From the IMG/VR virus record IMGVR_UViG_3300042514_000542, positions 1 through 64,000 of that record: a stretch of DNA of 64,000 bases; one strand, 5' to 3'. The position numbers and the translations under genes are program-made. The notes beneath the pieces were generated by a model. That model searched no databases. It was given only the letters and a program-made list of their open reading frames with translations, and was not told the DNA's origin. This document shows, in pieces, positions 26,669 through 50,944 of the stretch. Every line of letters begins with the position of its first letter. The stretch's first letter is position 1.

Positions 26669-26675
26669 AGATAAA

Positions 26676-26749: not shown

Positions 26750-26751
26750 CA

Positions 26752-27192
26752 ATGAAAAATCAATATCCAATAGCATTTGAAAGAGGAAAGTTAGTGAAAT
26801 ATCTAAAGCCTCACAAGTATACCAAAAAATATGAGGAATATTCATTAGAATTATACGAAGATCAAACACTTCTTGAATTGATTGGTTGGGTTGAAGAACA
26901 TGGTGGTGAATTTAAAAATGCTCTCGTAAGACATGAATATGGTGGATATGGTGATGATGGTCACATGGAACTGTATTTGAAAATACCCTTGAGTGAAAAG
27001 GAAATAGAAGATCAAGAAAAAGAATACGAAAAACTGTTATCCGAATGGAACGAGTGGAAAGAACTTTCCAAAACAGCTAAGGATACCGAAGAAGCTAAAA
27101 ATAAAGCCACCAGAGCAAAAGCCCTAAAGACTCAAGAAAATAATCTTTTAGCTAAATTGAGAAAAATCAGAGAACAACAAAATAAATTATGA
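26752..27192 (+). CDS. Hypothetical protein
   Basis: 146-aa ORF with coiled-coil C-terminus. Confidence 0.65.
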   Translation: MKNQYPIAFERGKLVKYLKPHKYTKKYEEYSLELYEDQTLLELIGWVEEHGGEFKNALVRHEYGGYGDDGHMELYLKIPLSEKEIEDQEKEYEKLLSEWNEWKELSKTAKDTEEAKNKATRAKALKTQENNLLAKLRKIREQQNKL

Positions 27193-27398
27193 CATTAGAA
27201 AAATACATAAAAAATTTACAAGAATTTGTAGAGGAAAATCCAGAAATGAAAGATGCGTTGGTGGTGACATCAGCAGATGCAGAGGGTAACAGTTTTGAAC
27301 CTGTGTATCATACACCTAGTTCTGGACGCTACCAAGACTGCGAATTTCGACAAGAGTTATATGAAGATGAAAAATTTAATGCAGTTTGTGTAAACTAA
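27189..27398 (+). CDS. Hypothetical protein
   Basis: ATGA-coupled; DAEGNSF motif. Confidence 0.65.
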   Translation: MTLEKYIKNLQEFVEENPEMKDALVVTSADAEGNSFEPVYHTPSSGRYQDCEFRQELYEDEKFNAVCVN

Positions 27399-27401
27399 AT
27401 T

Positions 27402-27590
27402 ATGATAATTACAATAGGAGTATGGGTAATACCAGTAGTGGTGAATGTAGTGTGGATTTTACTTATGGTAAGATCCGTGATGGAGTGTAGTAGTGGGTGG
27501 TTTACTGGATTGGCTGAAATGATATTTGGAACAATTGGAACACTTATCATATGGTTAGTTTTCTTCGCAGTAATGTATTTTTGTAAGTAG
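27402..27590 (+). CDS. Small membrane protein
   Basis: Two hydrophobic segments. Confidence 0.6.
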   Translation: MIITIGVWVIPVVVNVVWILLMVRSVMECSSGWFTGLAEMIFGTIGTLIIWLVFFAVMYFCK

Positions 27591-27660
27591 CCTTGTTAGT
27601 TTAATGGTAAAACGTGGGATTTGTAACCCCTTGACGAGAGTTCGATTCTCTCACTCGGCT
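27590..27660 (+). tRNA. tRNA-Thr(TGT)
   Basis: Anticodon loop TT-TGT-AA; GAGAG-TTCGATT-CTCTC T arm. Confidence 0.75.
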
Positions 27661-27681
27661 CCGTAACTCATTGATTGTAAA

Positions 27682-27758
27682 TGTGGTGTAACTCAGTTGG
27701 TTAGAGTATCCGCCTGATAAGTGGAAAGTCGTTGGTTCGAGTCCAACCATCACAACCA
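27682..27758 (+). tRNA. tRNA-Ile(GAT) with CCA
   Basis: TCCGC-CT-GAT-AA-GTGGA. Confidence 0.9.
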
Positions 27759-27760
27759 TA

Positions 27761-27832
27761 GGGAGATTAGTAGAATGGATATAACGTCAGAATACGAATC
27801 TGGAAAAAGTGGTTCGATCCCATTATCTCTCA
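27761..27832 (+). tRNA. tRNA-Arg(ACG)
   Basis: TCAGA-AT-ACG-AA-TCTGG. Confidence 0.8.
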
Positions 27833-27837
27833 CAAAA

Positions 27838-27908
27838 GGGGCTATAATTTAGCGGTAAAATAGCGGTTTTGCAAATCGTTTTCGTCAGTTCGACTCTGAC
27901 TAGCTCCA
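27838..27908 (+). tRNA. tRNA-Ala(TGC)
   Basis: GGGGCTA/TAGCTCC (G3:U70); GCGGT-TT-TGC-AA-ATCGT. Confidence 0.88.
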
Positions 27909-27923
27909 CATAAGATTTCTATT

Positions 27924-27996
27924 GGGCATGTATTCCAACGGTAGAGAAAGTGCGCTTAGAACGCATAAAGTGTCAGTTCGAATCTGACCATGCCCA
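27924..27996 (+). tRNA. tRNA with Leu anticodon (TAG) but a short variable loop
   Basis: GTGCG-CT-TAG-AA-CGCAT; variable region only AAAGT. Confidence 0.8.
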
Positions 27997-28001
27997 CACA
28001 A

Positions 28002-28075
28002 CCCATGGTAGCTGATTTGGTTCAAGCGGCAGATTGAAGATTTGCAGTAGGTCGGTTCGATTCCGACACATGGGA
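28002..28075 (+). tRNA. tRNA-Phe(GAA)
   Basis: GCAGA-TT-GAA-GA-TTTGC. Confidence 0.85.
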
Positions 28076-28081
28076 CACATT

Positions 28082-28270
28082 ATGAAACAGAAAATTCCAA
28101 CAATTGAAATCCAGTTGGAAAAGGTTATAGTAAGTTCAGAAGGTAAGATAAAACTGGACGGTGATTGGAAAATGGAAATAGATCCCAATATCATTGTCGA
28201 TTGGGGAGAAGACATTGATCCAGAATTATCCGAACTAATGTTTTACGAATTACATAGAGATTATAGATAA
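28082..28270 (+). CDS. Hypothetical protein
   Basis: Start moved to the ATG after tRNA-Phe. Confidence 0.55.
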   Translation: MKQKIPTIEIQLEKVIVSSEGKIKLDGDWKMEIDPNIIVDWGEDIDPELSELMFYELHRDYR

Positions 28271-28274
28271 AGAA

Positions 28275-28652
28275 TCACCAATCATTACAGGCAGCTTGCT
28301 GTGGACTTCCCTTTTTAGCATTATCGCAATTATGTCTAGCCCTAAAAGATTTCTTACGTTTTGTATTACCACTTTTACCAGTTACTTTTACACCAGCTTG
28401 ACCCCAATGAATTCTCTTAACACTTCCATCTGGTTGTGTTGCACACTTAGTCCATTTCTTACCCTTACGATCAGATGATGTTTTCCCAGTAGCTTTGGTG
28501 CATTCTTCTGCATCCTCTTCTCCTACTTCTTCCTCTTCAACACAGTTATTAACGGTCTTACCATCTTTAATTTTTGTGCCACGTTTAACATACCCATCCC
28601 AGCACATCTTTTCATATAACAGGGAAATATTTTCTCGATCTTTTGAATACAT
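28275..28652 (-). CDS. Small basic, Cys-containing late protein
   Basis: TTAAATA-N5-ATG; CWDGY...NNCV and RKKSFRARHNC...ACNDW motifs. Confidence 0.65.
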   Translation of the reverse strand: MYSKDRENISLLYEKMCWDGYVKRGTKIKDGKTVNNCVEEEEVGEEDAEECTKATGKTSSDRKGKKWTKCATQPDGSVKRIHWGQAGVKVTGKSGNTKRKKSFRARHNCDNAKKGSPQQAACNDW

Positions 28653-28680
28653 GTTATTATTTAATCTAAACATAAATAAC

Positions 28681-28708
28681 TTGACTTTAATTAAAACCGA
28701 ATTATAAT
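28681..28708 (+). promoter_or_regulatory. Phage repeat promoter for tRNA-Asp/Gln
   Basis: TTGACT-TTAATTAAAACCGAAT-TATAAT; the tRNA starts 5 nt later. Confidence 0.8.
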
Positions 28709-28713
28709 ATAAA

Positions 28714-28787
28714 GGAACATTAGCATAGTGGTTTAATGCACCCGCCTGTCGAGCGGGTTATCGTCGGTTCGAATCCGTCATGTTCCG
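28714..28787 (+). tRNA. tRNA-Asp(GTC)
   Basis: CCCGC-CT-GTC-GA-GCGGG. Confidence 0.88.
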
Positions 28788-28796
28788 CATGTAAAT

Positions 28797-28872
28797 TGAG
28801 GGGTAGTGTAATGGTCTAGCACTGGTGGTTTTGATCCACCCAGAGAGGTTTCGAATACCTCTCCCTCTACCA
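28797..28872 (+). tRNA. tRNA-Gln(TTG) with CCA
   Basis: GGTGG-TT-TTG-AT-CCACC. Confidence 0.88.
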
Positions 28873-28903
28873 TATTAATTAAAACCGAAGTATAATACAG
28901 TAT

Positions 28904-29248
28904 ATGTCCGACTATCCAAAAGCCTATACAAGCAAAGACAGAATATCCAGAAAACCTCATACCTGTTGTGAGTGTGGTGGTAGAATTTTCTATAAAGAAA
29001 AGTATCATTACTTCACAGCCATATGGGATGAAAGATGGGGAACTTTTAAAACTTGTATGGATTGTGTTGAACTAAGGAAAACCTTTGAATCTGGTTTAAA
29101 ATATGATGAAAGACCTTGTGTTGGTGATTTATTTGAACATATTTTTGAAGGTAATTATAAACCTGATATCCAAACAGCGATTGACATTATGGATAAGCGT
29201 GGTAAATTTGTTCAACCTTGGATGAGAGATCGTTTAAAGAAAAAATAA
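28904..29248 (+). CDS. Hypothetical Zn-finger protein
   Basis: RKPHTCCECG...KTCMDC; preceded by the repeat promoter. Confidence 0.7.
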   Translation: MSDYPKAYTSKDRISRKPHTCCECGGRIFYKEKYHYFTAIWDERWGTFKTCMDCVELRKTFESGLKYDERPCVGDLFEHIFEGNYKPDIQTAIDIMDKRGKFVQPWMRDRLKKK

Positions 29249-29251
29249 CAT

Positions 29252-29337
29252 GGGTGATAGCGTCAAGGCGACAAACGGGATTTGAACTCCCGGCATACTC
29301 TAAAAGGTATAGGGTTCGATTCCTTTATCACCCGCCA
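29252..29337 (+). tRNA. tRNA-Ser(TGA) with CCA
   Basis: CGGGA-TT-TGA-AC-TCCCG; long variable arm; G73. Confidence 0.8.
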
Positions 29338-29349
29338 CATTTTAAAATT

Positions 29350-29748
29350 ATGAAGACAGATCAAGAACTATTAGATAAATGGAAACGTGTTGTAAATTTC
29401 TCCAGTGGATATCTGGAAGACACCCCAACAGAATTGAAATTATATGTATCCCAAAAATTGGAAGAATATGAGGACATGTGTTTTAGATGGGGTGACGAAG
29501 GAAAAATTAAGGATAACTCTAAATTCCCTAAATGTTTTATTCCTCAAGTTAGAGCTACACTTGGTAATCCAATAATTACATATGATGTCATGATTAACGG
29601 TAGGTTAGGTCTTGTTGTCGAAAATGGTAAGTGTTGGGACAAATATCAAGGTAGAGTAGGTATCCATTACGAACCAGAAGATATACACTGCCATACATCA
29701 CCAATGGGTGTATATAAGTGGGTTGATGAAAAATGGGAATATTGCTAA
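29350..29748 (+). CDS. Protein whose N-terminal half resembles the gp23 N-terminus
   Basis: LLDKWKRVVNFSS...LEEYE...FPKCFIPQVRAT versus gp23 IVDKWKDILDYSS...MENQE...LPKILIPMIRRT. Confidence 0.6.
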   Translation: MKTDQELLDKWKRVVNFSSGYLEDTPTELKLYVSQKLEEYEDMCFRWGDEGKIKDNSKFPKCFIPQVRATLGNPIITYDVMINGRLGLVVENGKCWDKYQGRVGIHYEPEDIHCHTSPMGVYKWVDEKWEYC

Positions 29749-29755
29749 AAGTATT

Positions 29756-29845
29756 GGAAGTGTGACAGAGTATGGTTATTGTGCTAATTTGCTAAATTAA
29801 GGCTATCCCTCAAAGGATACGGAGGTTCAAATCCTTTCACTTCCG
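29756..29845 (+). tRNA. tRNA-Ser(GCT)
   Basis: GGAAGTG/CACTTCC+G; anticodon loop TT-GCT-AA; long variable arm. Confidence 0.85.
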
Positions 29846-30017
29846 CATGACACATAGAACGAAATTAAAATGTATTGTAAATCCTATTCTAAGATTTATT
29901 CAATATAATAGTGATGAACCTTATGTAATTACATCAAAATTTAAAGATGGTGTATTCTTGGGTTATTCATTTCAAAGAGTCAAATACCGTTAATTAAAAC
30001 CGAAATACAATACGAAC

Positions 30018-30557
30018 ATGTGGTATCCATTAAACATTCATACAAACAATAGAGGTCTTCCAATTAACGCACATCCGGGTTCTTTTGGACACGCTAGAAA
30101 ATATAACTTCCACGAAGGAATTGATTTATACGGCAACGAAGGAGATTGGGTTTATGCCATGAAGGATGGTGTGGTAATATCCAATGAACGCTTCACAGGA
30201 CCATCTGTGGGTCATGATTGGCATCTGTCTCAAGCCGTAACAATCAAATCCGATACTGAATATTTTGTATATGGCGAACTTAAAAGTGATCTAAAGATTG
30301 GTGAATTCGTTAAAATGGGTACTAAGATTGGAGAACTTGTTCCTGTATTACCTAAAGAGAAAATCAGACCAGATATTCCAGAACATAGTAACGTGATGTT
30401 ACATCTTGAGAAATGGAATTTTAAATATGATCCAGTCGTTGGGTGGAAACCTTGGAAGACTAGATATGATAGACCAGAGTGGTTGGAAGATCCCACAAAT
30501 GATTTAATTGAAGCACTTAGAAATAAGCATCATCCTGTAAAACTATTAACAATGTAA
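30018..30557 (+). CDS. M23-family metallopeptidase
   Basis: HEGIDLY (HxxxD) and LHLE motifs; preceded by the repeat promoter. Confidence 0.75.
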   Translation: MWYPLNIHTNNRGLPINAHPGSFGHARKYNFHEGIDLYGNEGDWVYAMKDGVVISNERFTGPSVGHDWHLSQAVTIKSDTEYFVYGELKSDLKIGEFVKMGTKIGELVPVLPKEKIRPDIPEHSNVMLHLEKWNFKYDPVVGWKPWKTRYDRPEWLEDPTNDLIEALRNKHHPVKLLTM

Positions 30558-30559
30558 TT

Positions 30560-31252
30560 ATGAAAGTATTAATAACAAGCGGCGGTTGCAAAGTTCCAAT
30601 TGACGATGTAAGACATATTGGGAATTTTTCCAGTGGAAGATATGGTAAGGAATTATGCAACGAATTTACAAAAAATGGGAATGATGTAATCTTCTTCCAC
30701 GAAAAGGGAAGCGATAGACCTGAATATTTATATGTAAAAGATAATGTGGTGAATCCTACATACGTTGCATATAAAGATTACTATGACTATTTAAAAGTTA
30801 AAGATCTTATCAAAGAGGAACAACCCGATTTGATTCTTTCTGCTGCTGCAATATCTGATTATATTGTGGATAAGACAGAAGGTAAAATTTCTTCCGATAA
30901 TGATGAACTTACTATAAAACTCAAGAAAGGTGAAAAGGTGCTTCAATCGTTTAGAGAACTAGCACCCAAAGCCTTTATAGTCGGTTTCAAATTACTTGTA
31001 AGTCCGACTTATGAAGAGAAATATGAAGCAGTAAAGAAACAGTTGAAATATGTTGACGCTGTGGTTTACAATGATCTTACAGAACTTCGAAAGGGAAATG
31101 ATAAAAGAGAGTTAATATTCCAAGCCGATGATGGTAACATAGTCTCTGCTAAGAATATGACGGTTTCTGAAATCGTTGAAGAGTTATCTATATCTTCAAA
31201 GGTTTCAAAAGTATTTAAACACTATGAAATATTACTTAGGGAATTGACATGA
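30560..31252 (+). CDS. coaB: Phosphopantothenate-cysteine ligase (CoaB)
   Basis: VLITSGG...PIDDVRHIGNFSSGRYG, SAAAISDY, GKISS, VGFKL. Confidence 0.88.
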   Translation: MKVLITSGGCKVPIDDVRHIGNFSSGRYGKELCNEFTKNGNDVIFFHEKGSDRPEYLYVKDNVVNPTYVAYKDYYDYLKVKDLIKEEQPDLILSAAAISDYIVDKTEGKISSDNDELTIKLKKGEKVLQSFRELAPKAFIVGFKLLVSPTYEEKYEAVKKQLKYVDAVVYNDLTELRKGNDKRELIFQADDGNIVSAKNMTVSEIVEELSISSKVSKVFKHYEILLRELT

Positions 31253-31770
31253 ATGTATTATTAGGAGTAACAGGAAGTATAGCTGCAAAGCTGACACGCA
31301 AATTATCACAAAGCATCAAAGATTCTGGTCACGAAATAAAAACTGTTTATACTAATTCAGCTTATCATTTCACCCAGAGAACGATATATGGTGGTTATGG
31401 TGATGATGAAGAATGGGAATATTATCATGATAATGATAGTGTCCTCCACATCGACCTAGTAAAATGGGCGGATGTATTTGTAATAGCACCATGCACAGCA
31501 AATACATTAGCAAAAATAGCCAATGGGATTTGTGATAATCTTTTAACATCTTGTGTTAAAGCTTGGCCTAGAGATAAAACAAGAAATATAATACTAGCTC
31601 CAGCTATGAATTCAGAGATGTGGTATAATAAAATTACACAAGATCACATCAATACATTATCGTATGATAGGTTCGATATAATTGAACCTATCGAAAAAAA
31701 ATTATATTGTGGTGATACTGGTATTGGTGCTATGGCACATATTGACGATATAGTAAATAGTATTGAGTGA
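31249..31770 (+). CDS. coaC: Phosphopantothenoylcysteine decarboxylase (CoaC, HFCD flavoprotein)
   Basis: LLGVTGSIAA, HIDL..WAD..VIAPCTANTLAKIANGICDNLLT, APAMN..MW, LYCGDTGIGAM. Confidence 0.9.
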   Translation: MNVLLGVTGSIAAKLTRKLSQSIKDSGHEIKTVYTNSAYHFTQRTIYGGYGDDEEWEYYHDNDSVLHIDLVKWADVFVIAPCTANTLAKIANGICDNLLTSCVKAWPRDKTRNIILAPAMNSEMWYNKITQDHINTLSYDRFDIIEPIEKKLYCGDTGIGAMAHIDDIVNSIE

Positions 31771-31771
31771 T

Positions 31772-32005
31772 ATGAAAGATAAAGTAGAAGGAATTTTAGA
31801 AAACATGAAAAAACTTCAATGTACCTTGGAAAAGGAACAGAATCAATGTAGTCATGATAATGTTAAGGTAGAGAAGAATTCAAATACTGGCAACTATGAT
31901 CCTAGTGATAATCAGTATTGGGTGAATGTAGAATGTCTAGATTGTGGAAAATATATGATCTTTGATTATGAAAAAGATAGAGAACAGTATCTAAAATATT
32001 GTTGA
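31772..32005 (+). CDS. Hypothetical Zn-ribbon protein
   Basis: CSH...NTGNYDPSD..YW...ECLDCGK. Confidence 0.6.
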   Translation: MKDKVEGILENMKKLQCTLEKEQNQCSHDNVKVEKNSNTGNYDPSDNQYWVNVECLDCGKYMIFDYEKDREQYLKYC

Positions 32006-32011
32006 TGTAAA

Positions 32012-32083
32012 AGACCCATCGTATAATGGTTAATACCTCGGATTCCAAATCCGAAGATCTGCGTTCGATTCGTAGTGGGTCTG
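32012..32083 (+). tRNA. tRNA-Trp(CCA)
   Basis: TCGGA-TT-CCA-AA-TCCGA. Confidence 0.85.
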
Positions 32084-32089
32084 CTTAAT

Positions 32090-32160
32090 GTCTCGTTGGT
32101 CAAATGGTAAGGCGGCGGATTGCAAATTCGCAGTTGGGGGTTCGATTCCCTCACGGGACT
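32090..32160 (+). tRNA. tRNA-Cys(GCA)
   Basis: GCGGA-TT-GCA-AA-TTCGC; U73. Confidence 0.85.
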
Positions 32161-32849
32161 CACAAAATAGTTATAGCACTTCTAACAACATTAATGTTTC
32201 TAGACTTAGCATATACACCATCACCATCTCTACCACCACTAGCACCAGTATTTGCCTCGACAGTTGAAAACACACCTGACGCATTACTATCCGATGTAGC
32301 GATTCCTATATGGGAAAATGAAAACACAACCAATTGACCCTTTTTAATTTTTTTGGGTTTACGAATTATATCAGTTTTATTGGGAAGATTATCAGCCCAA
32401 GATTCAAATCCAAATGCTGCTGCTGTTTTTGGTCTTTCTGCTTCTGTGAAAATTCCAGCCTCTTTAATACACCAGCACATACATGCTGCGCAATAAGGTT
32501 CCCTGTTCTTATATCCATCTGGATAATTTGTAGCCGTCCAATATTTAGCGATACCATCTCCGTGATTTCTACCAGCATTCTCATATATACCGACTTGTGT
32601 TTTTGCTATATCGACAACTTTAATGCTGTTATTGGATACTGTTGGGGTTATATTAAACTTATCTAATATAGCACCGATTGTGATCGGACCAACTTCACCA
32701 TCGGGAGTAACCTTTAGAAACGTTTGAATACTTTTAATACTATTTAAAGTTCCCAATTTATCTGCAACTGCCTTTGTAGTGATTGGTCCAAATACACCAT
32801 CATCTTTAATTTTCAGGAATTGTTGTATCTTCTGTATTTGTGCTTTCAT
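32160..32849 (-). CDS. Endolysin: peptidoglycan-binding repeats plus CHAP domain
   Basis: DGVFGPIT and DGEVGPIT repeats; PYCAAC, SHIGI, EANT. Confidence 0.85.
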   Translation of the reverse strand: MKAQIQKIQQFLKIKDDGVFGPITTKAVADKLGTLNSIKSIQTFLKVTPDGEVGPITIGAILDKFNITPTVSNNSIKVVDIAKTQVGIYENAGRNHGDGIAKYWTATNYPDGYKNREPYCAACMCWCIKEAGIFTEAERPKTAAAFGFESWADNLPNKTDIIRKPKKIKKGQLVVFSFSHIGIATSDSNASGVFSTVEANTGASGGRDGDGVYAKSRNINVVRSAITIL

Positions 32850-37535: not shown

Positions 37536-38174
37536 GTGGAATCATTCGCACTATATTATGAAAAATTTTCTCTAAATCCAAGAAATTGGTTTATGAGTAA
37601 AGAAGAGAAGTTGAGGATAAGAGAACAAGATATTGAAATGCGTAAAGTCGCAATGCGACACGCTAGAGAAAACTTCAAAAAGATGAAAGACCTTTTGGCT
37701 TCAAAAGGTTATAGAATTCACAAGCACGACTTTTCTTATACTGTTAGGGGTGATAAGAAGGTGGGGATGGAACCTCCAAGACGAGATAAAATTAAGATTG
37801 GTGATCGTCAACTAGACATCCCATATCTCAAAACATTGTTTACAATGGCACATGAAGTTGGACATGTCTTACAATGGGATGATTCGACTAATAATAAACA
37901 TAAATTTGATGAGTTTTATTTATCTCAACTACGTGCTGAAATAGATAATGGTTATAATCATAGATTAAATCTGGAACATATACACAAAGTTTGGTATGAA
38001 TTAGATGCTTGGATTCAGGGTATGCAATTTATACCTATGGAATATAAACAAATATATAAAAAGTATGCATTTGATGCATATAAAACATATATGAATAGAG
38101 GTCCGAAGTATTATTATAATGATATGCTTCTTAGAACCCTATTAATTAAATTGAATGCTAAAGACCACTTTTAA
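37536..38174 (+). CDS. HExxH zinc metallopeptidase-like late protein
   Basis: TMAHEVGH...ELDAW; ATAAATA-N5-GTG; N-terminus MESFALYYE. Confidence 0.65.
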   Translation: MESFALYYEKFSLNPRNWFMSKEEKLRIREQDIEMRKVAMRHARENFKKMKDLLASKGYRIHKHDFSYTVRGDKKVGMEPPRRDKIKIGDRQLDIPYLKTLFTMAHEVGHVLQWDDSTNNKHKFDEFYLSQLRAEIDNGYNHRLNLEHIHKVWYELDAWIQGMQFIPMEYKQIYKKYAFDAYKTYMNRGPKYYYNDMLLRTLLIKLNAKDHF

Positions 38175-39660
38175 CATTCGGTATCATCTGTTTGGCTTTC
38201 TTATAAACCATCTGTTCCGTAATCTCTCTATTACTAAGTAACATTTCCGCAACCCAATCCTGTAATTTAGGAAGGTATAATCCCAATTGCTTTCTATCCG
38301 TTTGGAACTGTGGAAACCATTGCATTAACATATTCCCATTAATGATCGAGGAGATTCTCTTTTTGAGTTCTTCACCACCACCGGGAATAACATTTAATTT
38401 AGCCTCGGCTCTTTCAATCTTATCTAAGAACTCCTGCTTATTGAAAAGACCTGGACCACGGGAGGCTTCATCGCAATATCCAACAGCTTTAATGGTTTCC
38501 CAAGCTGGGTTATGTATAATTCTTCTTAGAACTTTAAGACTTAGTTTATCCAGTCCATGAACATGCATATGGTTTGCTACCGCAGCTAAAATATTCTTCT
38601 TATCATCTGGCCCAAGTTTAGCAAAACGTAATCTCTTAAAGATATTCTCAACAATGGGAACACCAGCAGATTCATGGGAGTGATAATTGCTAAAACCATT
38701 TGGTTTGATCCCCCTAGTTGTAGCCTTTCCAAAATCGTGGAATAATACAGCGAGATTTATAACTGGATCTGTATATGGTGATACTCTTAAGCATTCATGT
38801 ATATGACCCAGAACTTGCGAATCTCCTTCTGGATGATGTGCTGGATCATGGTCAAAACCTTCCATATCTGTAAATTCTGGAAGAATATCATGTAGGATTC
38901 CTGCGTCTTGTAATTTTTTCAGGAAGTTTGATAGGGTTGGTCCAGACTTAGCAGCCTTATACATTTCTTGGGAAATGCTCTCCTGTGAAATTAATTTAGG
39001 ATTTAATAATAGGTGTTTTAATTCCTTGGCAGCTTCCAATGTATCTGGTTCAATATCAAAGTCCATCTTGGCAGCAAATCTAAAGACTCTAAGAAGTCTG
39101 GTAGCGTCTTCCTTAAATCTTTCCTTGGCATTGCCAACAGCACGGATTACCTTATTCTCAAGATCCTTTAAACCTCCTTGGTAGTCAACGATACGACCAT
39201 GATAATCCAGACCAAAACTATTGATTGTAATATCACGCCTTTTTGTATCAGTCTCAAAACTATCAACTTCTGTGGATATGTTTTGTTGTCTACCCATTGC
39301 CGTTTGAGCATCTTCTCTAAACTTTGCTAAATCGAATGCATAATTATTATATAAAATGGTGTATACTGGTTGAGTATCATTCTTTGATATGTTTCTCAAC
39401 TCGAAATGATTAGATAAATCATCAAAGGAAATATTAGTTGCCATATCGACATCATCGATCTCATTACCCATAAGAAGATCCCTTGGAACACCACCAACAA
39501 TATATATCTCCCCTGTTGGAAATAATCCCATGATTTTGGTCATTAGTTCAAGACCAACACGTAATTCCTCAGATGAAGCTAAGGCTTGCTCCCATTTATC
39601 GGAAAAGTCTTCTACATTGTAGTTTACACTCTCTTTAAAGAATTTTGAAAAGGTTATCAT
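38158..39660 (-). CDS. cca: Class II tRNA nucleotidyltransferase (CCA-adding type) with HD domain
   Basis: YIVGGVPRDLL...DVDMAT, RRDITINS, EDATRLLR (EDxxR template motif), HHPEGD and LFHDFGK; no obvious poly(A)-polymerase G[RK]RF signature. Confidence 0.88.
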   Translation of the reverse strand: MITFSKFFKESVNYNVEDFSDKWEQALASSEELRVGLELMTKIMGLFPTGEIYIVGGVPRDLLMGNEIDDVDMATNISFDDLSNHFELRNISKNDTQPVYTILYNNYAFDLAKFREDAQTAMGRQQNISTEVDSFETDTKRRDITINSFGLDYHGRIVDYQGGLKDLENKVIRAVGNAKERFKEDATRLLRVFRFAAKMDFDIEPDTLEAAKELKHLLLNPKLISQESISQEMYKAAKSGPTLSNFLKKLQDAGILHDILPEFTDMEGFDHDPAHHPEGDSQVLGHIHECLRVSPYTDPVINLAVLFHDFGKATTRGIKPNGFSNYHSHESAGVPIVENIFKRLRFAKLGPDDKKNILAAVANHMHVHGLDKLSLKVLRRIIHNPAWETIKAVGYCDEASRGPGLFNKQEFLDKIERAEAKLNVIPGGGEELKKRISSIINGNMLMQWFPQFQTDRKQLGLYLPKLQDWVAEMLLSNREITEQMVYKKAKQMIPNVKSGL

Positions 39661-39688
39661 ATAGTATTCTTATTTAATAAATAATAAG

Positions 39689-40090
39689 GTGAGGACAATC
39701 GAAGAAAGTAATAAAACTATGGGGAACTTGGTGGAAGAGGCTATGTTTTTTGGGAAAACAGGTTCTAAATCTAAAAATTCAGTATTGCGTAAAATTGAAA
39801 AGGATACCGAAAATTATTTAACGGATGGTGGTAGATTCCCATTAACGGACGAATTAAAAATCGAAGTCAATGATGCTCATGGTTTGGCTGGGGTATTATC
39901 CCCTAGTGGACAGAAGGCTAGTTTAAGACTCATAGATGAATTACAGGGGGGTGTTTCTTTGGAGCTTAAGATTAGCACGGATGGGGCATGGAGAATACTC
40001 AACAAGGGTCAAGTTGTTGGTGGTGGGGAAGACCTAGACGAACGTGTGGTGTGGGATGCTTGGCTTGGGGAATTACTAAAGAATTACTAA
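39689..40090 (+). CDS. Hypothetical late protein
   Basis: ATAAATA-N5-GTG; divergent from cca. Confidence 0.6.
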   Translation: MRTIEESNKTMGNLVEEAMFFGKTGSKSKNSVLRKIEKDTENYLTDGGRFPLTDELKIEVNDAHGLAGVLSPSGQKASLRLIDELQGGVSLELKISTDGAWRILNKGQVVGGGEDLDERVVWDAWLGELLKNY

Positions 40091-40626
40091 TGATAACATT
40101 TAAAGCATTTTTTGAGTCTTTCAAGAGTTCGGGCATCGACATGAATCGTGCCTATGAGGTCTTCAACCAAGAATACCAAAAGTCAACAGGTAAATCTTGG
40201 GATAAGGGTAAATTTTTAAGCAGGGCGCAGAATTGGGACTTCTATGGCGATGATAATGGATTTATAACTGCTCGCCAACAAAAGAGTGGATTTGTTAAAC
40301 TTGTTGGTGCTGCTGGTTCCGATAAATCAAAATATAAAGGATTTAAGGAACTTGCATCAAAACATCTACCAGTTTGGGGTATGGTAGATGATAAACTATT
40401 TGAACTTCTCACTAAGTTGGGATATCGGGGTCCAAACAAAATCGAACTCTTTATGTTTAAGAAGATGATGACACCTGAAAAGATGGCTAGTGTTTTGGGT
40501 GGTGCTGTCATCAATAATATTGAAGGAAATAAAGTTACACTCACATATCCTGATATTGGAACTGTTACAAAATATTATATAGCTTCTCCCGAATATTGGA
40601 AGAAGGTTAGAGGTAATATTATTTAA
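40090..40626 (+). CDS. Putative internal head protein (MITFKAFFES)
   Basis: Start reassigned to the TAATG-coupled ATG at 40090. Confidence 0.65.
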   Translation: MITFKAFFESFKSSGIDMNRAYEVFNQEYQKSTGKSWDKGKFLSRAQNWDFYGDDNGFITARQQKSGFVKLVGAAGSDKSKYKGFKELASKHLPVWGMVDDKLFELLTKLGYRGPNKIELFMFKKMMTPEKMASVLGGAVINNIEGNKVTLTYPDIGTVTKYYIASPEYWKKVRGNII

Positions 40627-43819: not shown

Positions 43820-44269
43820 ATGGTTTTTAACAAGACTTATAGAAAATTAATGGAATATTACGAACCATCGGGAATTCTTCTAGAAGGTGTTCTTAATTCT
43901 GTTCCAAGAGATCTTTTAGGTATGGAAACCTCCTATGAGAACTTTCCCATAAAAGCACCTTATGGTTTCTGGGTAGATCGTAGTGGTAACTGGATAACTG
44001 TTCCATATATCGGTCACAGTCCAACGGCTCTCGGCATTATAAGAAAGGCCAATAAATACCTAGTGGAAAAAGGTATGGAACGAGTGGAAGATTATAGTCC
44101 CTATAAACCTCTTTATAGTGAAGGTTGGATGAGAGTTCAGTTGACAACAGGCACAGTCTTCTACGAATTCAAACCAGCAAACCAGATAGCAACGACACCC
44201 CAAAACAGATTTTTGGAGATGTGTAAGGAGATGTATAATATTCCAAATGCTGAAAATGATAGCGATTAA
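43820..44269 (+). CDS. Hypothetical late protein
   Basis: TTAAATA upstream; PYGFWVD.SG...H...GWMRV. Confidence 0.65.
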   Translation: MVFNKTYRKLMEYYEPSGILLEGVLNSVPRDLLGMETSYENFPIKAPYGFWVDRSGNWITVPYIGHSPTALGIIRKANKYLVEKGMERVEDYSPYKPLYSEGWMRVQLTTGTVFYEFKPANQIATTPQNRFLEMCKEMYNIPNAENDSD

Positions 44270-44276: not shown

Positions 44277-45350
44277 ATGATAACATTTAAACATTACATA
44301 ATACGAGAGGGTAAGCTCAAGGATTCAAAGAAAGTATTGAAATTGGGTGATTATCCAATGTTTACCGTTTTTATCGCCAAGGGGGATAATATCTCTGAAA
44401 GACTTATGGCATATAAAGAAAACGAGGATTATTATTCCAAGGCATTTGAACTTGCTAGAGAGAGAATTACGAGGCTGGGTCTTCCCTCCATGCATGTCAA
44501 TGTGGTGTTTAAGGACACGCCCGATGCTTATGGATTGGCTCATGGAAATCCAGACACTAAAACGAGTGTGGTTAGGTCTGTATCATTGAGTGTAAGATTT
44601 ATTGATTTTGGATCAAGACCGAGCATGGACAATATAAAGTATTCATTCTCTGCGTTGGTAGATACGATAGTTCATGAATGGGCGCATATGTGGATGTTCA
44701 ATAATGGAAAGGCTTTTCGTGATGCAATCAAACAGTATCACGAAGCATTGGTATATTCGAACATAGATAAAATACCATATAACTATGGTGATACTGAAAG
44801 AATATTCACCACATTCTATAAAGATATTGCAATTCTTTTTAAGACATATAAATTTAATCTTAAAGAAAACCCACAATATATGTCCCTAAAGAGCGTCAGA
44901 AAGGATATGCAACGTATTTTCTTAGACACTCTAAATGAATATGGTATGTATGCTCTTGCCGTAGATAAGGATGTATTGAATCCATATATAGATAAAATAT
45001 CTGATATAGTTTACCATAATGTGGGGAAGAATCCCAAATCTGTTTTTAAGTATATTGAAAGTTTAAATTTGGAAAAAGTGTTTGAGGGACAGATTAAACA
45101 GGAGACACAACGAAGCATTTCCAAGAGATCCGATATTAGAAAACAATTATCAGATATGATTAAATTTACTGGAGCATATGGAATGACAAATCCCGATGAA
45201 GCATGGGCAACCGCTATTGAAAAATTCAAGATACTAGATCCATACCATAAAAAAAGAATTCGTGAACTGATGCAAGTAAAAGGTCAAAGAGAACTCCCCA
45301 ATAGAAGAATGCAGAAACATCTTAATATGGTGAATAATCTTGACAACTAA
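44277..45350 (+). CDS. HExxH metallopeptidase-like putative internal protein (MITFKHYIIRE)
   Basis: IVHEWAH ... YGMTNPDEAWA zincin-type pattern. Confidence 0.7.
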   Translation: MITFKHYIIREGKLKDSKKVLKLGDYPMFTVFIAKGDNISERLMAYKENEDYYSKAFELARERITRLGLPSMHVNVVFKDTPDAYGLAHGNPDTKTSVVRSVSLSVRFIDFGSRPSMDNIKYSFSALVDTIVHEWAHMWMFNNGKAFRDAIKQYHEALVYSNIDKIPYNYGDTERIFTTFYKDIAILFKTYKFNLKENPQYMSLKSVRKDMQRIFLDTLNEYGMYALAVDKDVLNPYIDKISDIVYHNVGKNPKSVFKYIESLNLEKVFEGQIKQETQRSISKRSDIRKQLSDMIKFTGAYGMTNPDEAWATAIEKFKILDPYHKKRIRELMQVKGQRELPNRRMQKHLNMVNNLDN

Positions 45351-45365: not shown

Positions 45366-45689
45366 ATGTTACACATGACTACAGTGGTTCACATCAATGA
45401 TCCATACGACATCTATATAGGTCGTCCTTCAATTTGGGGCAATCCGCATAGTCATTTACCCGAAAGTGCCGCAGAATACATCGTAGCGACTCGAAAAGAA
45501 GCCATAGAGAAGTATCGGGAATACATTCTAAACAGTAACTATCTAATGTCAAGGTTACACGAACTCGATGGAAAGGTTCTTGGATGCCACTGTAAACAAA
45601 AAGGTAAAAATGTTCCTTGCCACGGAGACGTATTAGTAGAGCTTATCGAAAAAATGAACTATACTAAGGTTGATTTGGAAGATTTTTAA
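45366..45689 (+). CDS. DUF4326-like protein
   Basis: YIGRPSIWGNP...LDGKVLGCHC...CHGDVL; TTGACA...TATCAT promoter upstream. Confidence 0.8.
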   Translation: MLHMTTVVHINDPYDIYIGRPSIWGNPHSHLPESAAEYIVATRKEAIEKYREYILNSNYLMSRLHELDGKVLGCHCKQKGKNVPCHGDVLVELIEKMNYTKVDLEDF

Positions 45690-47464
45690 ATCCTCAGTTC
45701 TTGGGTGAAGTAATCTATAGCAGCCTCACTATCGTAGTCATCAAATCCATAATATGGAACATCCATATCACCTTCAATTTCGGGGTCGGGATCGAATGGG
45801 TCACTATCATGCTCAATAGACAACCCAATTGAATCTATACTAAATTTAGCAAGCAGAGGACTATCATACCAATGATCACTATTTTCAAAGACCACACTGA
45901 AAGAATGGTCTATTGTATCTGATAAAACATCCGTTTCTTGTGGAATAAATATCAAAGACTCTATACCGGATTTAAAATACTTAACCAGTTGTGAGTATGT
46001 TCCACTTTCATACCCAGCACGGATAGCATCCCTTAACGTATCAATCGTATCAGGATCATTTACTTTCAGAAGAGTATATACATCCTTTATAGTTATATCT
46101 GACGGGTCGATATCCAATTCTTCTAATAAGTCTGGATATTCAGTAATCCATTCTTTTACTGCTTCCATTATTCTAAAATTGACAACATTGTTTCCCATCA
46201 CACGTTCCAACAAATCTATTAAATCTTCTTCTGGCGCACGGTAATCCATATCCTCAGTTAAATTTTTATCCCCCGATATATAGTCACCATATGAATATAG
46301 ATTTGGTGGTTGGTAGGTGTCAACAAGCTCATTCCAATTTTCCCATACCCTATAATAGATAAAATTATCTTTCAATTGAATTTTAGCCATAATCTCTTCG
46401 GGAGTGCTATACTGAGCATGTCCCCCGCCCGATCCCGATATGAAAAGGTTTGCAATTTCTCTTTTAATATCATCCTCTCCCATTAATCCCAATTTTACCT
46501 TTTCGGTAAATGGAAGTAGGTCTGGTCTTAATTCACGTATCTTTTGTTGTCTTTCCTCTGATAGTTCTCTGAATTTAAATAATTCTGGTCTTAGTCTAAA
46601 TAACATTTCCGATTGTTCTTCAGAGAGATCGGATATATCGAAGTTGTTATCGGCGGCATAACCACCCCCAACAATACGTTTAATTAAATAGTCTTCACCA
46701 TCACCTCTACTACTGGTATTAACCTTATATGTTAATAATTTTAGAATGTGTGGATGATACTTTGGATTGGGCTTTTCATTTGCCCTCCCCTTCATTTCCC
46801 CAAGGGTGCTATTATCATTCAGAATGAAGGTCAGGGATGGTCTAGCAAAAACCCTACCACCCTGTTTCACCACCTTCCTCAAAGATAATACAGTATCCGT
46901 ATCTCTGGCACTGGCGGTATTACCACAATGACCCATAGCACCTCCCTCGATCTTACAAGACCTTCTATCCAAATCAAACCAAACAAATCCATCATCAAAC
47001 TTTATAAGTTCAGAAATGGAGCCATCCACCAATTCATCAGTAATATCGATCCATTGTTCCCTATCAGTCTTCCACTCACTCTCCCAATCTCTAAACTTTA
47101 AGAGTGCTTCAGTTACACCATCTCTATAATCATATCTTTGAATCTTATTTATGGGTAAAGAGAGATAATGTTCTAAGCTATTTAGAGTCTGCCTAGCTAG
47201 ATTTATTTGCTGTGTGGGGAAAGAATCAGCCCTCGTCAATTCTTTTAATATGGAAGTCCTTACAGATTTGAGAAACCAAACCACAATATTATCCTTCTTA
47301 AGAACTCCAATACTTCTCTGAACGATATCGTTCAGATTTTTCGAAAGTGTATCGTCCTGTTCCAATACTTTCCCGAACATTTGCATATATCTCTCAGTTC
47401 TAGCTTTGACACCCTCTTCCAGAACATGGAGATATATTTGATAGAATTTCGAAAATGTTAACAT
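45686..47464 (-). CDS. Putative internal protein (MLTFSKFYQIYLHVLEE) with PcfJ-like motif
   Basis: EGGAMGHCG...LSLR...EMKGRAN.KP; TTAAATA upstream. Confidence 0.65.
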   Translation of the reverse strand: MLTFSKFYQIYLHVLEEGVKARTERYMQMFGKVLEQDDTLSKNLNDIVQRSIGVLKKDNIVVWFLKSVRTSILKELTRADSFPTQQINLARQTLNSLEHYLSLPINKIQRYDYRDGVTEALLKFRDWESEWKTDREQWIDITDELVDGSISELIKFDDGFVWFDLDRRSCKIEGGAMGHCGNTASARDTDTVLSLRKVVKQGGRVFARPSLTFILNDNSTLGEMKGRANEKPNPKYHPHILKLLTYKVNTSSRGDGEDYLIKRIVGGGYAADNNFDISDLSEEQSEMLFRLRPELFKFRELSEERQQKIRELRPDLLPFTEKVKLGLMGEDDIKREIANLFISGSGGGHAQYSTPEEIMAKIQLKDNFIYYRVWENWNELVDTYQPPNLYSYGDYISGDKNLTEDMDYRAPEEDLIDLLERVMGNNVVNFRIMEAVKEWITEYPDLLEELDIDPSDITIKDVYTLLKVNDPDTIDTLRDAIRAGYESGTYSQLVKYFKSGIESLIFIPQETDVLSDTIDHSFSVVFENSDHWYDSPLLAKFSIDSIGLSIEHDSDPFDPDPEIEGDMDVPYYGFDDYDSEAAIDYFTQELRI

Positions 47465-48552: not shown

Positions 48553-48830
48553 GACTCCCCCAGTCTCATTCTGTTTTAATTACAGCCCCCCCCCTCTCAT
48601 GGAAAACATGAGACATAATGACACACACGCGCACCCATGCGTAAATTCTCATTCTGTTTTAATTATACATTCATCCCCTTCATAAGATTTCCTTATGATC
48701 TTTTCCTTATAGTCCTAAGACTTAGTAGTATCGGTATCACTACTATCTTCCGGTGAGGCTACCCACGCTTATGCCTTGATAACATATTGTTATTCTACTT
48801 CGGTTTTAATTACACCCATTCCCTCTATTA

Positions 48831-49055
48831 CTATTGGGAAATCTTTGCTTGAAGAGCTTCAATCTCTTGATGAAGAGCAATCTTCTTAAGTTCTACGATG
48901 ATTGTCTTAAGAACATCGAAAGGATAAACCAGTATGGAATAGTTTCCATATACAAAGTTCACAATCCTGTTATTAAGGTTTGCTTGGTTTGATGCACGCT
49001 TGGCAGCATCTATAAGTGTTTCGGAATTGTTCTTAGTAATGTTGATCGGTTTCAT
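48831..49055 (-). CDS. Hypothetical protein (cassette)
   Basis: Repeat promoter directly upstream. Confidence 0.65.
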   Translation of the reverse strand: MKPINITKNNSETLIDAAKRASNQANLNNRIVNFVYGNYSILVYPFDVLKTIIVELKKIALHQEIEALQAKISQ

Positions 49056-49423
49056 GATACCCTAATTCTAGTTCGGTTTTAATTAATGAGATTTGGTATG
49101 TGTGACAATTTGACGCACTGTATATGTTTTATAACACTTAGATAAGTTTATCAAATCAAATTGTTTGTCATATCGACAAAGTTATACTGGTGATAATGAT
49201 ATAATTATATCAATGAGTAATGGGATTAATTAGTTGGAGTATGTATGACTTGCTCACCAGACTTCTCACAAAGAACTACGGTAACATCATAAGACTTCTT
49301 AGCCTTAAATGTTGTAGCAGCTTTTTGTTGAGCTTCATAAGAAGTGTTGGCATAGACTTCAATCGACTTACCTTTATAGAATGCTTTGTATCCGTTCATG
49401 TTACTATTCTAGTTCGGTTTTAA

Positions 49424-49879
49424 TTACATGTGGTTCCAATCAATGGATACCAACTTACCATTCTTCAATCCCATATTGAAATCATGGGTATCACATACAT
49501 CAAATTTATTATGTAAGAACTTAACAAACTTGACATACTTCTTATATATCTTAGTCTCCATCTTTTCTGAAGTCTCAAAAGGCCATAGATCTACCTTAAA
49601 CTTCTCACACTTCTCTTGAATCATGACATTAAATTCATGATTACCTTTGAAGTATTGTAGGTTAGCAAAATGTTTATCACATGGGACTTCCTTAATCTCA
49701 TTATAACTACGTTGAATCTTAATGACATACTCATATCCCTTACGAGAATATACAGTTGATTCACAACCTCTTCCAATCACATTAAATCCTTTTGATTCAA
49801 GATACTCATAAGCCTTCTCAATATCAGTCATTTGAAGAAGTTTATTAACCAAAAACATTGTAACGCTGTTCAGTTTCAT
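49424..49879 (-). CDS. Minimal protein-kinase-like protein
   Basis: IGRGCESTVY (Gly loop), VIKI, DTHDFNMG (catalytic loop), VSID. Confidence 0.65.
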   Translation of the reverse strand: MKLNSVTMFLVNKLLQMTDIEKAYEYLESKGFNVIGRGCESTVYSRKGYEYVIKIQRSYNEIKEVPCDKHFANLQYFKGNHEFNVMIQEKCEKFKVDLWPFETSEKMETKIYKKYVKFVKFLHNKFDVCDTHDFNMGLKNGKLVSIDWNHM

Positions 49880-50003
49880 GCTATAAGTCTAGTTCGGTTT
49901 TAATCACTAAAAAGTTCAGATTTTCTCTAGGGAAAAATCACTTATATCCCTTACAGTATATAGGATTTCTCAAAACATCATTTCTGTTAGATTTAATCGT
50001 TTT

Positions 50004-50261
50004 TCAATCAAATTCTTTCCTAATACCATCCTTTTCATAGTCTCCATAACCCTTCATATATTCTTCTATCTCTTTAGGAGTTAGATTAGTCTCTCTTTCT
50101 CCCATAGAATCATAATAATGAGGTTTTGGACTTCTACTATAATAGTAATCAGCTTCACCTCTTTCTTTAGGTGTTTGAGTATATCTTGACTTAGTTACAT
50201 TCTTATTACAGAAGTGAACACTCATTGACATGATACTCTCATTACATTTCGGGCAGTTCAT
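50004..50261 (-). CDS. Hypothetical protein (cassette)
   Basis: MNCPKC...RGEADYYYSR.PKPHYY...EY.KGY. Confidence 0.65.
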   Translation of the reverse strand: MNCPKCNESIMSMSVHFCNKNVTKSRYTQTPKERGEADYYYSRSPKPHYYDSMGERETNLTPKEIEEYMKGYGDYEKDGIRKEFD

Positions 50262-50443
50262 AACCCTATTCTAGTTCGGTTTTAATTAATCTATGTATGT
50301 AATAAAAGACATGAATAATATAAGACCAGCACATATACCAGTAGCACCTGCTGCATCATTTAAATTTACTTGTAATAGGATTCCCATTACCATAATAAGT
50401 AAGAGTGATATAATGAATGAATAAAGTGGTTTCATTGTATTGT

Positions 50444-50944
50444 TTAATCAATAGTAAGTTCCTTCTTAGCCTTCACAAGATCATCAATGATACTGATAGG
50501 GAATGTTTGACATCCCACTTTAATAGTATTCTCTGTTACAGTTGCATTATGAGCTTCATTAAGTTTTACTTCTACTTCCTTTGGTTTTTCAATGATTCTA
50601 CCATAGTCAAGATAAGTTCCAGATGTTCTATTCCACAACCTGATAGTATTAGACTCGATTATGATACTTTGAACTTTATGCTGTAGGATTTTATTATTAT
50701 TATTTCTCCAATATACAGAAGTTCCAATCATCTTATAAGCTTTTACAATCTTATCTTCGAATGTTTCTGTTTCCACAAGTTCAAAGTAATCCGGATCCCA
50801 TGAAGAAGATATTTCTTCAAACCTAATACATGTTGGATTTATACTTTCAACGGTTAGAACTTTATCTTTATGATCCCAATTATTTTTAAATTGATATTTT
50901 TTGATTCTACGAACTTTATCTCCTACTTTAAATTTAACTTTCAT
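50444..50944 (-). CDS. Hypothetical modular protein (FKVGD..FELV and VGCQTF modules)
   Basis: Shares modules with 51088-51963 and 59763-60194. Confidence 0.7.
   Translation of the reverse strand: MKVKFKVGDKVRRIKKYQFKNNWDHKDKVLTVESINPTCIRFEEISSSWDPDYFELVETETFEDKIVKAYKMIGTSVYWRNNNNKILQHKVQSIIIESNTIRLWNRTSGTYLDYGRIIEKPKEVEVKLNEAHNATVTENTIKVGCQTFPISIIDDLVKAKKELTID

Follow-up and report, generated by a model that had tools for sequence, protein, structure and literature searches.

In this work, we analyzed a stretch of 64,000 nucleotides of viral DNA (positions 1 to 64,000 of the IMG/VR record IMGVR_UViG_3300042514_000542, hereafter the window), and in particular its gene cca, which lies at 38158-39660 on the minus strand and whose product belongs securely to the class II nucleotidyltransferase family. 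The best explanation of the results, which we favor with some reserve, is that this product is a phage CCA-adding and tRNA 3'-end repair enzyme that is tagged for, and packaged into, the phage head. The case for packaging rests on the tag, a ten-residue N-terminal peptide (MITFSKFFKE) that resembles the capsid-targeting sequence (CTS) of bacteriophage T4 and recurs on other proteins of the window, and not on the timing of cca expression. Phage CCA enzymes and the capsid-targeting route of T4 are each known, and it is their combination that is new: in the literature we found no report of a tRNA nucleotidyltransferase within a virion, nor of packaging for the phage tRNA nucleotidyltransferases.

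Identity of the cca product

The gene and the parts of its product are the following:

38158-39660, minus strand: cca, class II tRNA nucleotidyltransferase of predicted CCA-adding type with an HD domain, 500 amino acids, stop codon TAG (Pfam, NCBIfam, PHROG and fold)
39631-39660, minus strand: CTS-like tag MITFSKFFKE, residues 1-10, a proposed propeptide cut after Glu10 (comparison with the T4 CTS)
39511-39630, minus strand: residues 11-50, a short linker and two conserved helices (DFxxKW...SSEEL) packed on the enzyme (alignment and AlphaFold2 model)
39142-39507, minus strand: pol-beta-type nucleotidyltransferase head, residues 52-173, with motifs A, B and C and the flexible loop (Pfam PF01743 PolyA_pol, expectation value (E) 1e-23)
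39097-39111, minus strand: motif D, EDATR, the nucleotide-selecting EDxxR, residues 184-188 (motif scan)
38866-39063, minus strand: neck and RNA-binding domain, residues 200-265 (Pfam PF12627 PolyA_pol_RNAbd)
38554-38757, minus strand: HD phosphohydrolase domain, residues 302-369 (Pfam PF01966)

An earlier note on this DNA, made from the sequence alone, had described the open reading frame (ORF) as a class II nucleotidyltransferase with an EDxxR motif, an HD domain and an N-terminal extension like those of the T4 internal proteins (IPs). Its coordinates, strand and length were confirmed, the motif and the HD domain were found as described, and the extension proved to be real and a stronger case than had been claimed, namely a seemingly portable tag that matches the T4 CTS positions.

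All the motifs of class II enzymes are present (GGVPRD at residues 56-61, DVD at 70-72, RRD at 141-143, DYQGGLKDL at 159-167, EDATR at 184-188 and HD at 308-309). Their conservation was judged in an alignment of 65 homologues with 55-92% identity, in which motifs A to D are invariant, including E184, D185 and R188, as are H271, H276, H286, H308, D309, H364 and H368; this invariance of the catalytic residues indicates that the protein is under selection. The product matches PHROG 2244 (tRNA nucleotidyltransferase) with E 5e-58, and its closest solved sequence is the CCA-adding enzyme of Geobacillus stearothermophilus (PDB 1miv, E 1e-29), with the E. coli poly(A) polymerase at E 1e-20. An AlphaFold2 model built on the homologue alignment reached a mean predicted local distance difference test score (pLDDT) of 90.9 and a predicted template modeling score of 0.86. 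When this model was compared with the PDB by Foldseek, the best matches were the CCA-adding enzymes 1miv (template modeling (TM) score 0.76) and 6qxn, from Planococcus (0.79, both normalized to target length), which rank ahead of CC-adding, A-adding and poly(A) enzymes. With these two proteins and E. coli Cca the product shares the arrangement of head, neck and body, motifs A to D with EDxxR and the flexible loop, and with the Cca proteins of E. coli and M. tuberculosis it shares an HD domain placed after the neck. It differs from the bacterial class II CCA enzymes in its low identity to them (about 20-22%), in 30 extra N-terminal residues that include the tag, and in about 100 extra C-terminal helical residues.

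The precise reaction is less firmly indicated than the family. The best NCBIfam model, PRK13299 (CCA tRNA nucleotidyltransferase), scored 155.7 bits against a cut-off of 290, and PRK10885 (multifunctional CCA addition/repair) 137.2 bits against 451 with residues 51-383 aligned; the pcnB models scored 108 and 85 bits, below the CCA models and far under their own cut-offs. Scores this far below the equivalog cut-offs mark a divergent member whose exact activity is not assured by homology, and thus leave CCA, CC or A addition unsettled, which counts against the explanation given above. The EDxxR motif occurs in bacterial poly(A) polymerases too, the Pfam head domain is common to poly(A) polymerases and the pcnB models do match, so that a poly(A) polymerase, a CC-only or A-only adder or an inactive relic has to be considered, all NCBIfam scores being below their cut-offs. 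We judge this very improbable. In profile, sequence and fold comparisons alike the best match is a CCA-adding enzyme, the catalytic residues do not vary among the homologues, and the context is one of 16 tRNA genes that lack an encoded CCA. Furthermore, the region between motifs A and B differs from 1miv by a single one-residue gap, indicating that the flexible loop, which is lost in CC-adding enzymes (PMC10673834), is retained, and the product has the HD domain that is found in the CCA enzymes of E. coli and M. tuberculosis but not in the E. coli poly(A) polymerase (PMC10673834). From these comparisons we hold with high confidence that cca encodes a CCA-type enzyme, its CCA-adding specificity being the best-supported reading and not a proven one.

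The N-terminal tag and its distribution

Alignments of the cca product with PDB sequences begin at about residue 51. Those with cultured-phage proteins begin at residues 51-53, apart from a weak match to Acinetobacter phage ABPH49 that starts at residue 15, and the cultured-phage enzymes are therefore without the tagged extension. Fifty residues precede this conserved start in the cca product and 20 in 1miv. In the AlphaFold2 model, helices 19-29 and 31-46 (pLDDT at least 90) pack against the enzyme, and in the homologue alignment of residues 11-50 W23 is nearly invariant and L33 invariant; the pLDDT is 69 for residues 11-20 and 52 for the tag itself. The phage enzymes of PHROG 2244 (for example those of Escherichia phage Av-05, Sinorhizobium phages phiM12/phiN3 and Tunturiibacter phage Tunturi_5) are of the same family and come likewise from large phages with many tRNA genes, with an assumed role in tRNA maturation or repair, but they share no more than 34% identity with the cca product and have no tagged extension.

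In T4, the capsid-targeting sequence is MKTYQEFIAE (PMC8442874). For packaging, the first ten residues of IPIII are enough; positions 4 and 7 act in targeting and positions 8 and 10 in processing by the prohead protease gp21, which cuts after L/I-x-E; T4 packages the 76-kDa protein Alt, and CTS fusions with proteins up to beta-galactosidase are packaged and delivered (PMC9026906). In the T4 genome record, IPII and IPIII begin MKTYQEFIAE/A (the slash marking the cut) and IPI begins MKTFKEF. The tag of the cca product matches this sequence at the four functional positions (F4, F7, F8 and E10). At position 4, 54 of the 65 homologues have F and 6 have Y; F, L or Y stands at position 7 and F, Y or L at position 8 in 61 sequences each, and E at position 10 in 42, while positions 2, 3, 5, 6 and 9 vary freely. 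The codons of the conserved tag residues vary synonymously between loci, and the constraint thus acts on the peptide.

The tag is not confined to cca. A pattern with an aromatic residue at position 4, F, L, I or Y at 7 and a hydrophobic residue at 8 occurs at 7 of the 72 gene starts of the window, against 0.43 expected from internal positions, and at none of the 336 internal methionines; the corresponding p of 3e-7 is optimistic because the regular expression was refined after the sequences had been seen. All these starts have a hydrophobic-x-Glu within residues 9-17. As a control, the pattern was run over 100 kb of T4, with about 170 annotated genes, and picked out ipII, ipIII and two other annotated genes. 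The other tagged genes of the window, including variant and weaker matches recognized by comparison of gene starts, are:

40090-40626, plus strand: protein MITFKAFFES..., 178 amino acids; mature form about 19 kDa with isoelectric point (pI) 9.6, small, basic and IP-like; relatives keep the tag
44277-45350, plus strand: protein MITFKHYIIRE..., 357 amino acids, 40 kDa, pI 9.4; weak metallopeptidase-like fold lead
45686-47464, minus strand: protein MLTFSKFY...LEE, 592 amino acids, with TAAATA upstream
43820-44269, plus strand: variant tag FNK-x-Y-x-x-LME (..FNKTYRKLME); a homologue is fused before NUDIX and the CCA enzyme in relative P0084
40623-43787, minus strand: 1054-residue protein whose start, MPRFEDIFE, is a weaker tag match, with TAAATA upstream
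19425-20489, plus strand: DUF5661 protein MKSFKEFYLSE..., close to the T4 IPI start MKTFKEF
8468-10432, minus strand: 654-residue protein MDSFKELL...IIAE/A, adjoining the capsid gene, with TAAATA upstream

Three ORFs within 6 kb (cca, 40090-40626 and 44277-45350) start with MITF, and the triplets at the putative cut sites of the other tagged proteins are L-S-E, I-R-E, I-A-E, L-E-E and L-M-E. Except for the DUF5661 protein, the tagged neighbors had no match in Pfam or the PHROGs, and comparison with the ESM Atlas gave only weak leads (PcfJ-like and MA-metallopeptidase-like, TM below 0.5). A likeness between the N-terminus of the 1054-residue protein and NUDIX fusions was rejected, its E of 0.06 not being significant.

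Of the 987 homologues of the enzyme recovered in a protein search, the best 120 (56-92% identity, mostly about 495 amino acids) are nearly all tagged. Longer relatives are fusions (among them P0051, P0060, P0062, P0069, P0084 and P0106), in which the tag always holds the extreme N-terminus. In some of them other domains are inserted between tag and enzyme: (i) P0051 and P0076 consist of tag, NUDIX and enzyme, (ii) P0084 of tag, a homologue of window ORF 43820, NUDIX and enzyme, and (iii) P0069 and others of tag, about 340 residues, an internal tag remnant (..SFNHQYKMLMKEY..) and enzyme. Other relatives carry a C-terminal GNAT or NUDIX domain, and one has a weak ART-PolyVal match that does not reach the Pfam cut-off. 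Where a fusion keeps an internal tag copy at its junction, this copy could be a protease site. In related loci, the genes adjoining cca are often tagged too, and tag-like N-termini persist in the families of two unrelated cargo proteins, ORF 40090 and the DUF5661 protein at 19425.

In a distant lineage (P0103-P0108) the enzyme starts with a different peptide, MKNKDQILLE (MKNKDQILLE-x-LY type). On the 166-kb contig of P0106 (L015, 8701-13932), four to five unrelated neighbors of cca share this start and three other genes carry a MISFKEY-type tag, so that both types coexist, and the DUF5661 family shows the same two types. Both keep a hydrophobic residue at position 8 and Glu at position 10, the second type having L-L-E. 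A peptide that is exchanged as a unit and common to unrelated proteins behaves as an address tag and not as a part of the enzyme, and on these comparisons a portable address tag is very likely. The two coexisting types could stand for two docking partners or two destinations.

The window also encodes head proteins of T4 type:

6914-8365, plus strand: T4 gp23-type major capsid protein (Pfam Gp23, E 5e-84; tblastn to cyanomyovirus gp23)
4837-5505, plus strand: T4 gp21-type prohead protease (Pfam Peptidase_S77, E 3e-29; PHROG 207)
5969-6853, plus strand: putative scaffold protein at the position of T4 gene 22, with 10 L/I-x-E motifs

The capsid protein is about 32% identical to cyanomyovirus gp23. 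Together with other genes of the window, which include a ribonucleotide reductase and a Dda-like helicase, the gp23-type capsid and gp21-type protease identify the source, as far as gene content tells, as a distant, uncultured T4-like phage. The window (G+C content 35.7%) is identical to part of a 206.6-kb IMG/VR contig, and its DNA occurs only in lake and freshwater DNA metagenomes (18, all from lake water); neither near-identical nor distant DNA relatives of it were found among cultured phages. The density of L/I-x-E motifs in the putative scaffold, 3.4 per 100 residues, is 2.5 times the window median and the highest among proteins of more than 200 residues, whereas the cca product has 0.8 per 100 against a median of 1.4, a contrast that is suggestive only. 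As a possible cleavage site of the capsid protein, L-E-E/A of the window protein (residues 54-57) aligns inexactly with L-T-E/A of T4 and was not used as evidence. An ORF for a TnsA-like endonuclease (4343-4804, plus strand) is squeezed in immediately before the gene of the prohead protease, and an ORF with helix-turn-helix and HNH endonuclease domains (25123-25719, minus strand) lies on the opposite strand within the tRNA region; each is probably a mobile or homing element.

Promoter-like motifs and tRNA genes

Promoter-like motif classes were read from the 70 nt before each gene. An early-type repeat, TTAAAACCGAAnTAnAAT, has 33 matches against 0.16 expected, and its TAnAAT ends 6 nt before the ATG of 21 mostly small genes. 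The exact T4 late consensus TATAAATA, which spans -13 to -6 in T4 (PMC1524935), is not enriched in the window (11 matches against 11.3 expected), while its core TAAATA ends 5-11 nt before 18-19 gene starts, against 0.57 expected, with exactly 5 nt the commonest distance. Cyanomyoviruses use NATAAATA as late promoter (PMC2984593). The genes headed by TAAATA include the prohead protease, the putative scaffold, baseplate-like and lysis-type genes, and all the tagged genes lie within TAAATA-headed units, none having the early repeat. Two copies stand between cca and its divergent neighbor:

39671-39676, minus strand: TAAATA late-type promoter core, 10 nt before the cca ATG (motif scan)
39678-39683, plus strand: divergent TAAATA, 5 nt before GTG 39689 (unit 39689-40090 and 40090-40626; motif scan)

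In 10 of 11 related loci (L002-L012) TAAATA lies 5-9 nt upstream of cca though the flanks diverge, and by analogy with T4 the copy before cca may reasonably be read as a late promoter.

In both classes the spacing is fixed, as TAnAAT, 6 nt and ATG or TAAATA, 5 nt and ATG or GTG (for example at 48792-63643, minus strand; 25797-30011, plus strand; 4824-4836; and 5956-5968), and Shine-Dalgarno sequences are nearly absent from the window. With T4 geometry, TAAATA plus 5 nt places the transcription start on the A of the ATG and thus yields leaderless mRNAs; most genes would then have leaderless mRNAs, each with its own promoter. At its 3' end, cca overlaps by 17 nt a convergent ORF (37593-38174, plus strand) for which no match was found in Pfam or the PHROGs and whose HEVGH (HExxH) motif suggests a zinc metallopeptidase.

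ARAGORN predicted 23 tRNA genes, confirmed by Rfam, and a tRNA-Ser(UGA) read by hand brings the number to 24. This last gene (29252-29336, plus strand) is of type II with an encoded CCA and was missed by ARAGORN; its Rfam match (29252-29333) is sub-threshold and to the tRNA-Sec model, and it overlaps a doubtful TTG-start ORF at 29218-29748. The genes lie in two places:

21470-32161, plus strand: tRNA region with 22 tRNA genes, 15 of them without CCA, and early-type repeats interspersed (ARAGORN, Rfam)
55502-56048, minus strand: two more tRNA genes, Leu-TAA without CCA and a 92-nt gene with CAT anticodon and CCA (ARAGORN)

With the end of the Rfam match taken as the discriminator base, an encoded CCA is present in 8 of the 24 genes and absent from 16: Glu, two Met, Sup, Asn, His, Thr, Arg-ACG, Ala, Leu-TAG, Phe, Asp, Ser-GCT, Trp, Cys and Leu-TAA. 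Because two thirds of the tRNA genes thus lack CCA, the most likely task of the predicted enzyme is to complete the 3' ends of the phage's own tRNAs. In the T4 record the Ser, Pro and Gln tRNA genes are likewise without CCA (Ile is unclear), and ipI lies directly beside the tRNA cluster. To our knowledge, T4 has no CCA enzyme of its own and relies on that of the host, unlike this phage, which encodes one along with its 16 CCA-less genes.

The earlier note had counted about 17 CCA-less tRNA genes behind early-type promoters and a late-type promoter before cca, and had argued from late synthesis that the enzyme is carried in the virion. Sixteen of the genes that it listed were recovered, and the seventeenth, tRNA-Tyr, was not found in the window by ARAGORN, at default or relaxed settings, or by Rfam at E up to 1. 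The placement of the tRNAs in early-type units stood, with copies of the repeat directly before tRNA-Glu (21440) and tRNA-Asp (28691) and elsewhere in the tRNA region, as did the TAAATA core before cca, the same as before head genes. The argument from timing is weak by itself, as an enzyme made late could simply mature tRNAs late in infection.

Several other features of the tRNA genes were observed. C74 is still encoded in 15 of the 16 CCA-less genes (21470-32161 and 55964-56048; p = 7e-11 at the C content of the window), followed by A (11), T (3) or C-G (Thr), so that C75-A76 are not kept. The 92-nt tRNA (55502-55593, minus strand) has both a long variable arm and the CAT anticodon, which are seldom combined, and a degenerate tRNA-like element with a T-arm and an ACCA end (23034-23105, plus strand, within ORF 23019-23408) was seen at relaxed threshold only. 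An amber-suppressor-type tRNA with anticodon CTA is present (23941-24013, plus strand), and TAG ends 5 of the 72 genes, cca included; amber read-through was rejected, there being no long TAG-interrupted frame in the window, and in cca it would add just 4 residues. The tRNA region also holds, behind an early-type promoter unit, genes for CoaB-like (DFP domain) and CoaC-like (Flavoprotein) proteins (30560-31770, plus strand); CoaB and CoaC are the two halves of phosphopantothenoylcysteine synthetase/decarboxylase.

Proposed packaging of the enzyme and its alternatives

In the proposed scheme, cca would be transcribed together with the head genes from its TAAATA (gp55-type) late promoter, the tag would dock the enzyme precursor in the scaffolding core of the prohead, and the gp21-type protease would cut the tag off after Glu10, leaving an enzyme of about 56 kDa in the head that would enter the next cell with the DNA. 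There, ahead of all phage protein synthesis, it would add CCA to the tRNAs transcribed from early-type promoters or, alternatively, mend damaged tRNA 3' ends, its HD domain removing terminal phosphates as in the Cca proteins of E. coli and M. tuberculosis. Precursor that escapes packaging could act in the cell of its synthesis too. On the evidence of the tag, we consider targeting to the capsid and packaging into the virion rather probable, and we give the whole course of events, up to and including action early in the following infection, about even odds.

The scheme resembles the T4 system in several respects. As in T4, the tag is a ten-residue propeptide whose positions 4, 7, 8 and 10 hold an aromatic residue, Phe, a hydrophobic residue and Glu, respectively; it is common to unrelated cargo genes that cluster in variable loci, and it occurs together with a gp21-type protease, a gp23-type capsid and a late-type promoter motif. 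Like Alt, the cargo would be a large enzyme and not a small DNA-binding protein. In contrast to the T4 internal proteins, it is an RNA-maturation enzyme, a kind not known among them, two tag types coexist in some genomes, and the system is known here from sequence alone.

Several points weigh against this scheme. Besides the unsettled activity and the optimistic tag statistics already mentioned, (i) protein matches to cultured phages are all below 35% identity, and there is no close cultured phage, (ii) the TAAATA of cca stands 10 nt from the start codon and not at the dominant 5 nt, (iii) the term late derives just from the analogy with T4 and from which genes carry the motif, (iv) the predicted cut site is F-K-E, with Phe at P3 in place of the Leu or Ile of T4, and (v) the mature enzyme, at 55.6 kDa and pI 5.9, is acidic and large, unlike the small basic internal proteins of T4. 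The last two points also speak for an ordinary cytoplasmic CCA enzyme that is never packaged and matures tRNAs in the same infection, its N-terminal peptide serving to dock the enzyme to another factor of the phage, for control of stability or as a context for translation start. Phage tRNA nucleotidyltransferases are indeed common (444 phage records; PHROG 2244), and such genes have been regarded as functions of tRNA maturation or repair in work that does not mention virions in this connection (PMC7824862, PMC7344957, PMC6102473). Notwithstanding, we consider this possible but unlikely, as the peptide matches the T4 CTS at exactly the four positions defined by experiment, is limited to about 10% of the genes, all in TAAATA-headed units, is conserved at the level of protein and not of DNA, stays at the very N-terminus in fusion proteins and is swapped whole from one lineage to another. 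A role as a signal for leaderless translation was rejected on the same protein-level conservation and because the tag and leaderless starts do not go together: three tagged genes stand inside operons, and the majority of genes with TAAATA plus 5 nt are untagged.

A different weighting of functions would make the enzyme, packaged or not, mainly a means of counter-defence that restores tRNA 3' ends attacked by toxins (acceptor-end nucleases, nucleotidyltransferase toxins or 3'-end phosphorylation); the HD domain would clean the end beforehand, and maturation of phage tRNAs would be secondary. The metal-binding residues of the HD domain are invariant, and in the CCA enzymes of E. coli and M. tuberculosis this domain acts as a phosphatase or 2',3'-cyclic phosphodiesterase in the repair of ends (PMC10673834). 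PMC10435456 discusses how host toxins modify the acceptor ends of tRNAs and considers a link to phage defense possible. Delivery with the DNA would make most sense for a function needed before gene expression. In addition, the enzyme is fused in relatives to NUDIX, GNAT and, by a weak match, ART-PolyVal domains, and ART and GNAT domains figure in polyvalent conflict proteins that are injected with phage or conjugative DNA (Iyer et al. 2017, as summarized in PMC7824862). In such relatives the enzyme is likewise a module beside NUDIX, GNAT and possibly ART, whereas the window protein is a single enzyme for which a T4-type head propeptide is proposed and not a MuF or portal-associated anchor. As a principal function we nevertheless find counter-defence doubtful: the 16 CCA-less phage tRNA genes are an obvious housekeeping substrate, no defense system or toxin target is known for the host, and the ART match falls below the Pfam cut-off. 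It is compatible with the tagged and packaged CCA-adding and repair enzyme that we prefer, and does not exclude it.

The fusions among the relatives extend the packaging proposal. A whole freshwater clade of T4-like phages may load and inject a CCA enzyme by means of at least two interchangeable CTS-like tags. The enzyme would travel by itself or within a polyprotein that also has NUDIX, GNAT or ADP-ribosyltransferase domains and that the prohead protease would cut apart at its internal tag copies; judging from the relatives' sequences, we see about equal chances for and against this wider claim.

Should the tag have another role, the finding would reduce to a divergent but ordinary phage CCA enzyme. 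If it works as in T4, the phage brings along an enzyme of its own for finishing and repairing tRNAs, and its early tRNAs would depend neither on the host enzyme nor on whether the host attacks tRNA ends. The enzyme would be the first of those that mature the translation apparatus to travel in a virion. Capsid targeting of the T4 kind, studied almost only in T-even coliphages, would then be old, widespread and modular, with exchangeable tags and polyprotein cargos, and the internal-protein route of T4 would be an ancient general cargo system that reaches far beyond the T-even phages. Injected proteins of uncultured T4-like phages could also be predicted by a rule read from their sequences, and the tagged neighbors of cca, mostly without assigned function, would become candidate injected effectors.

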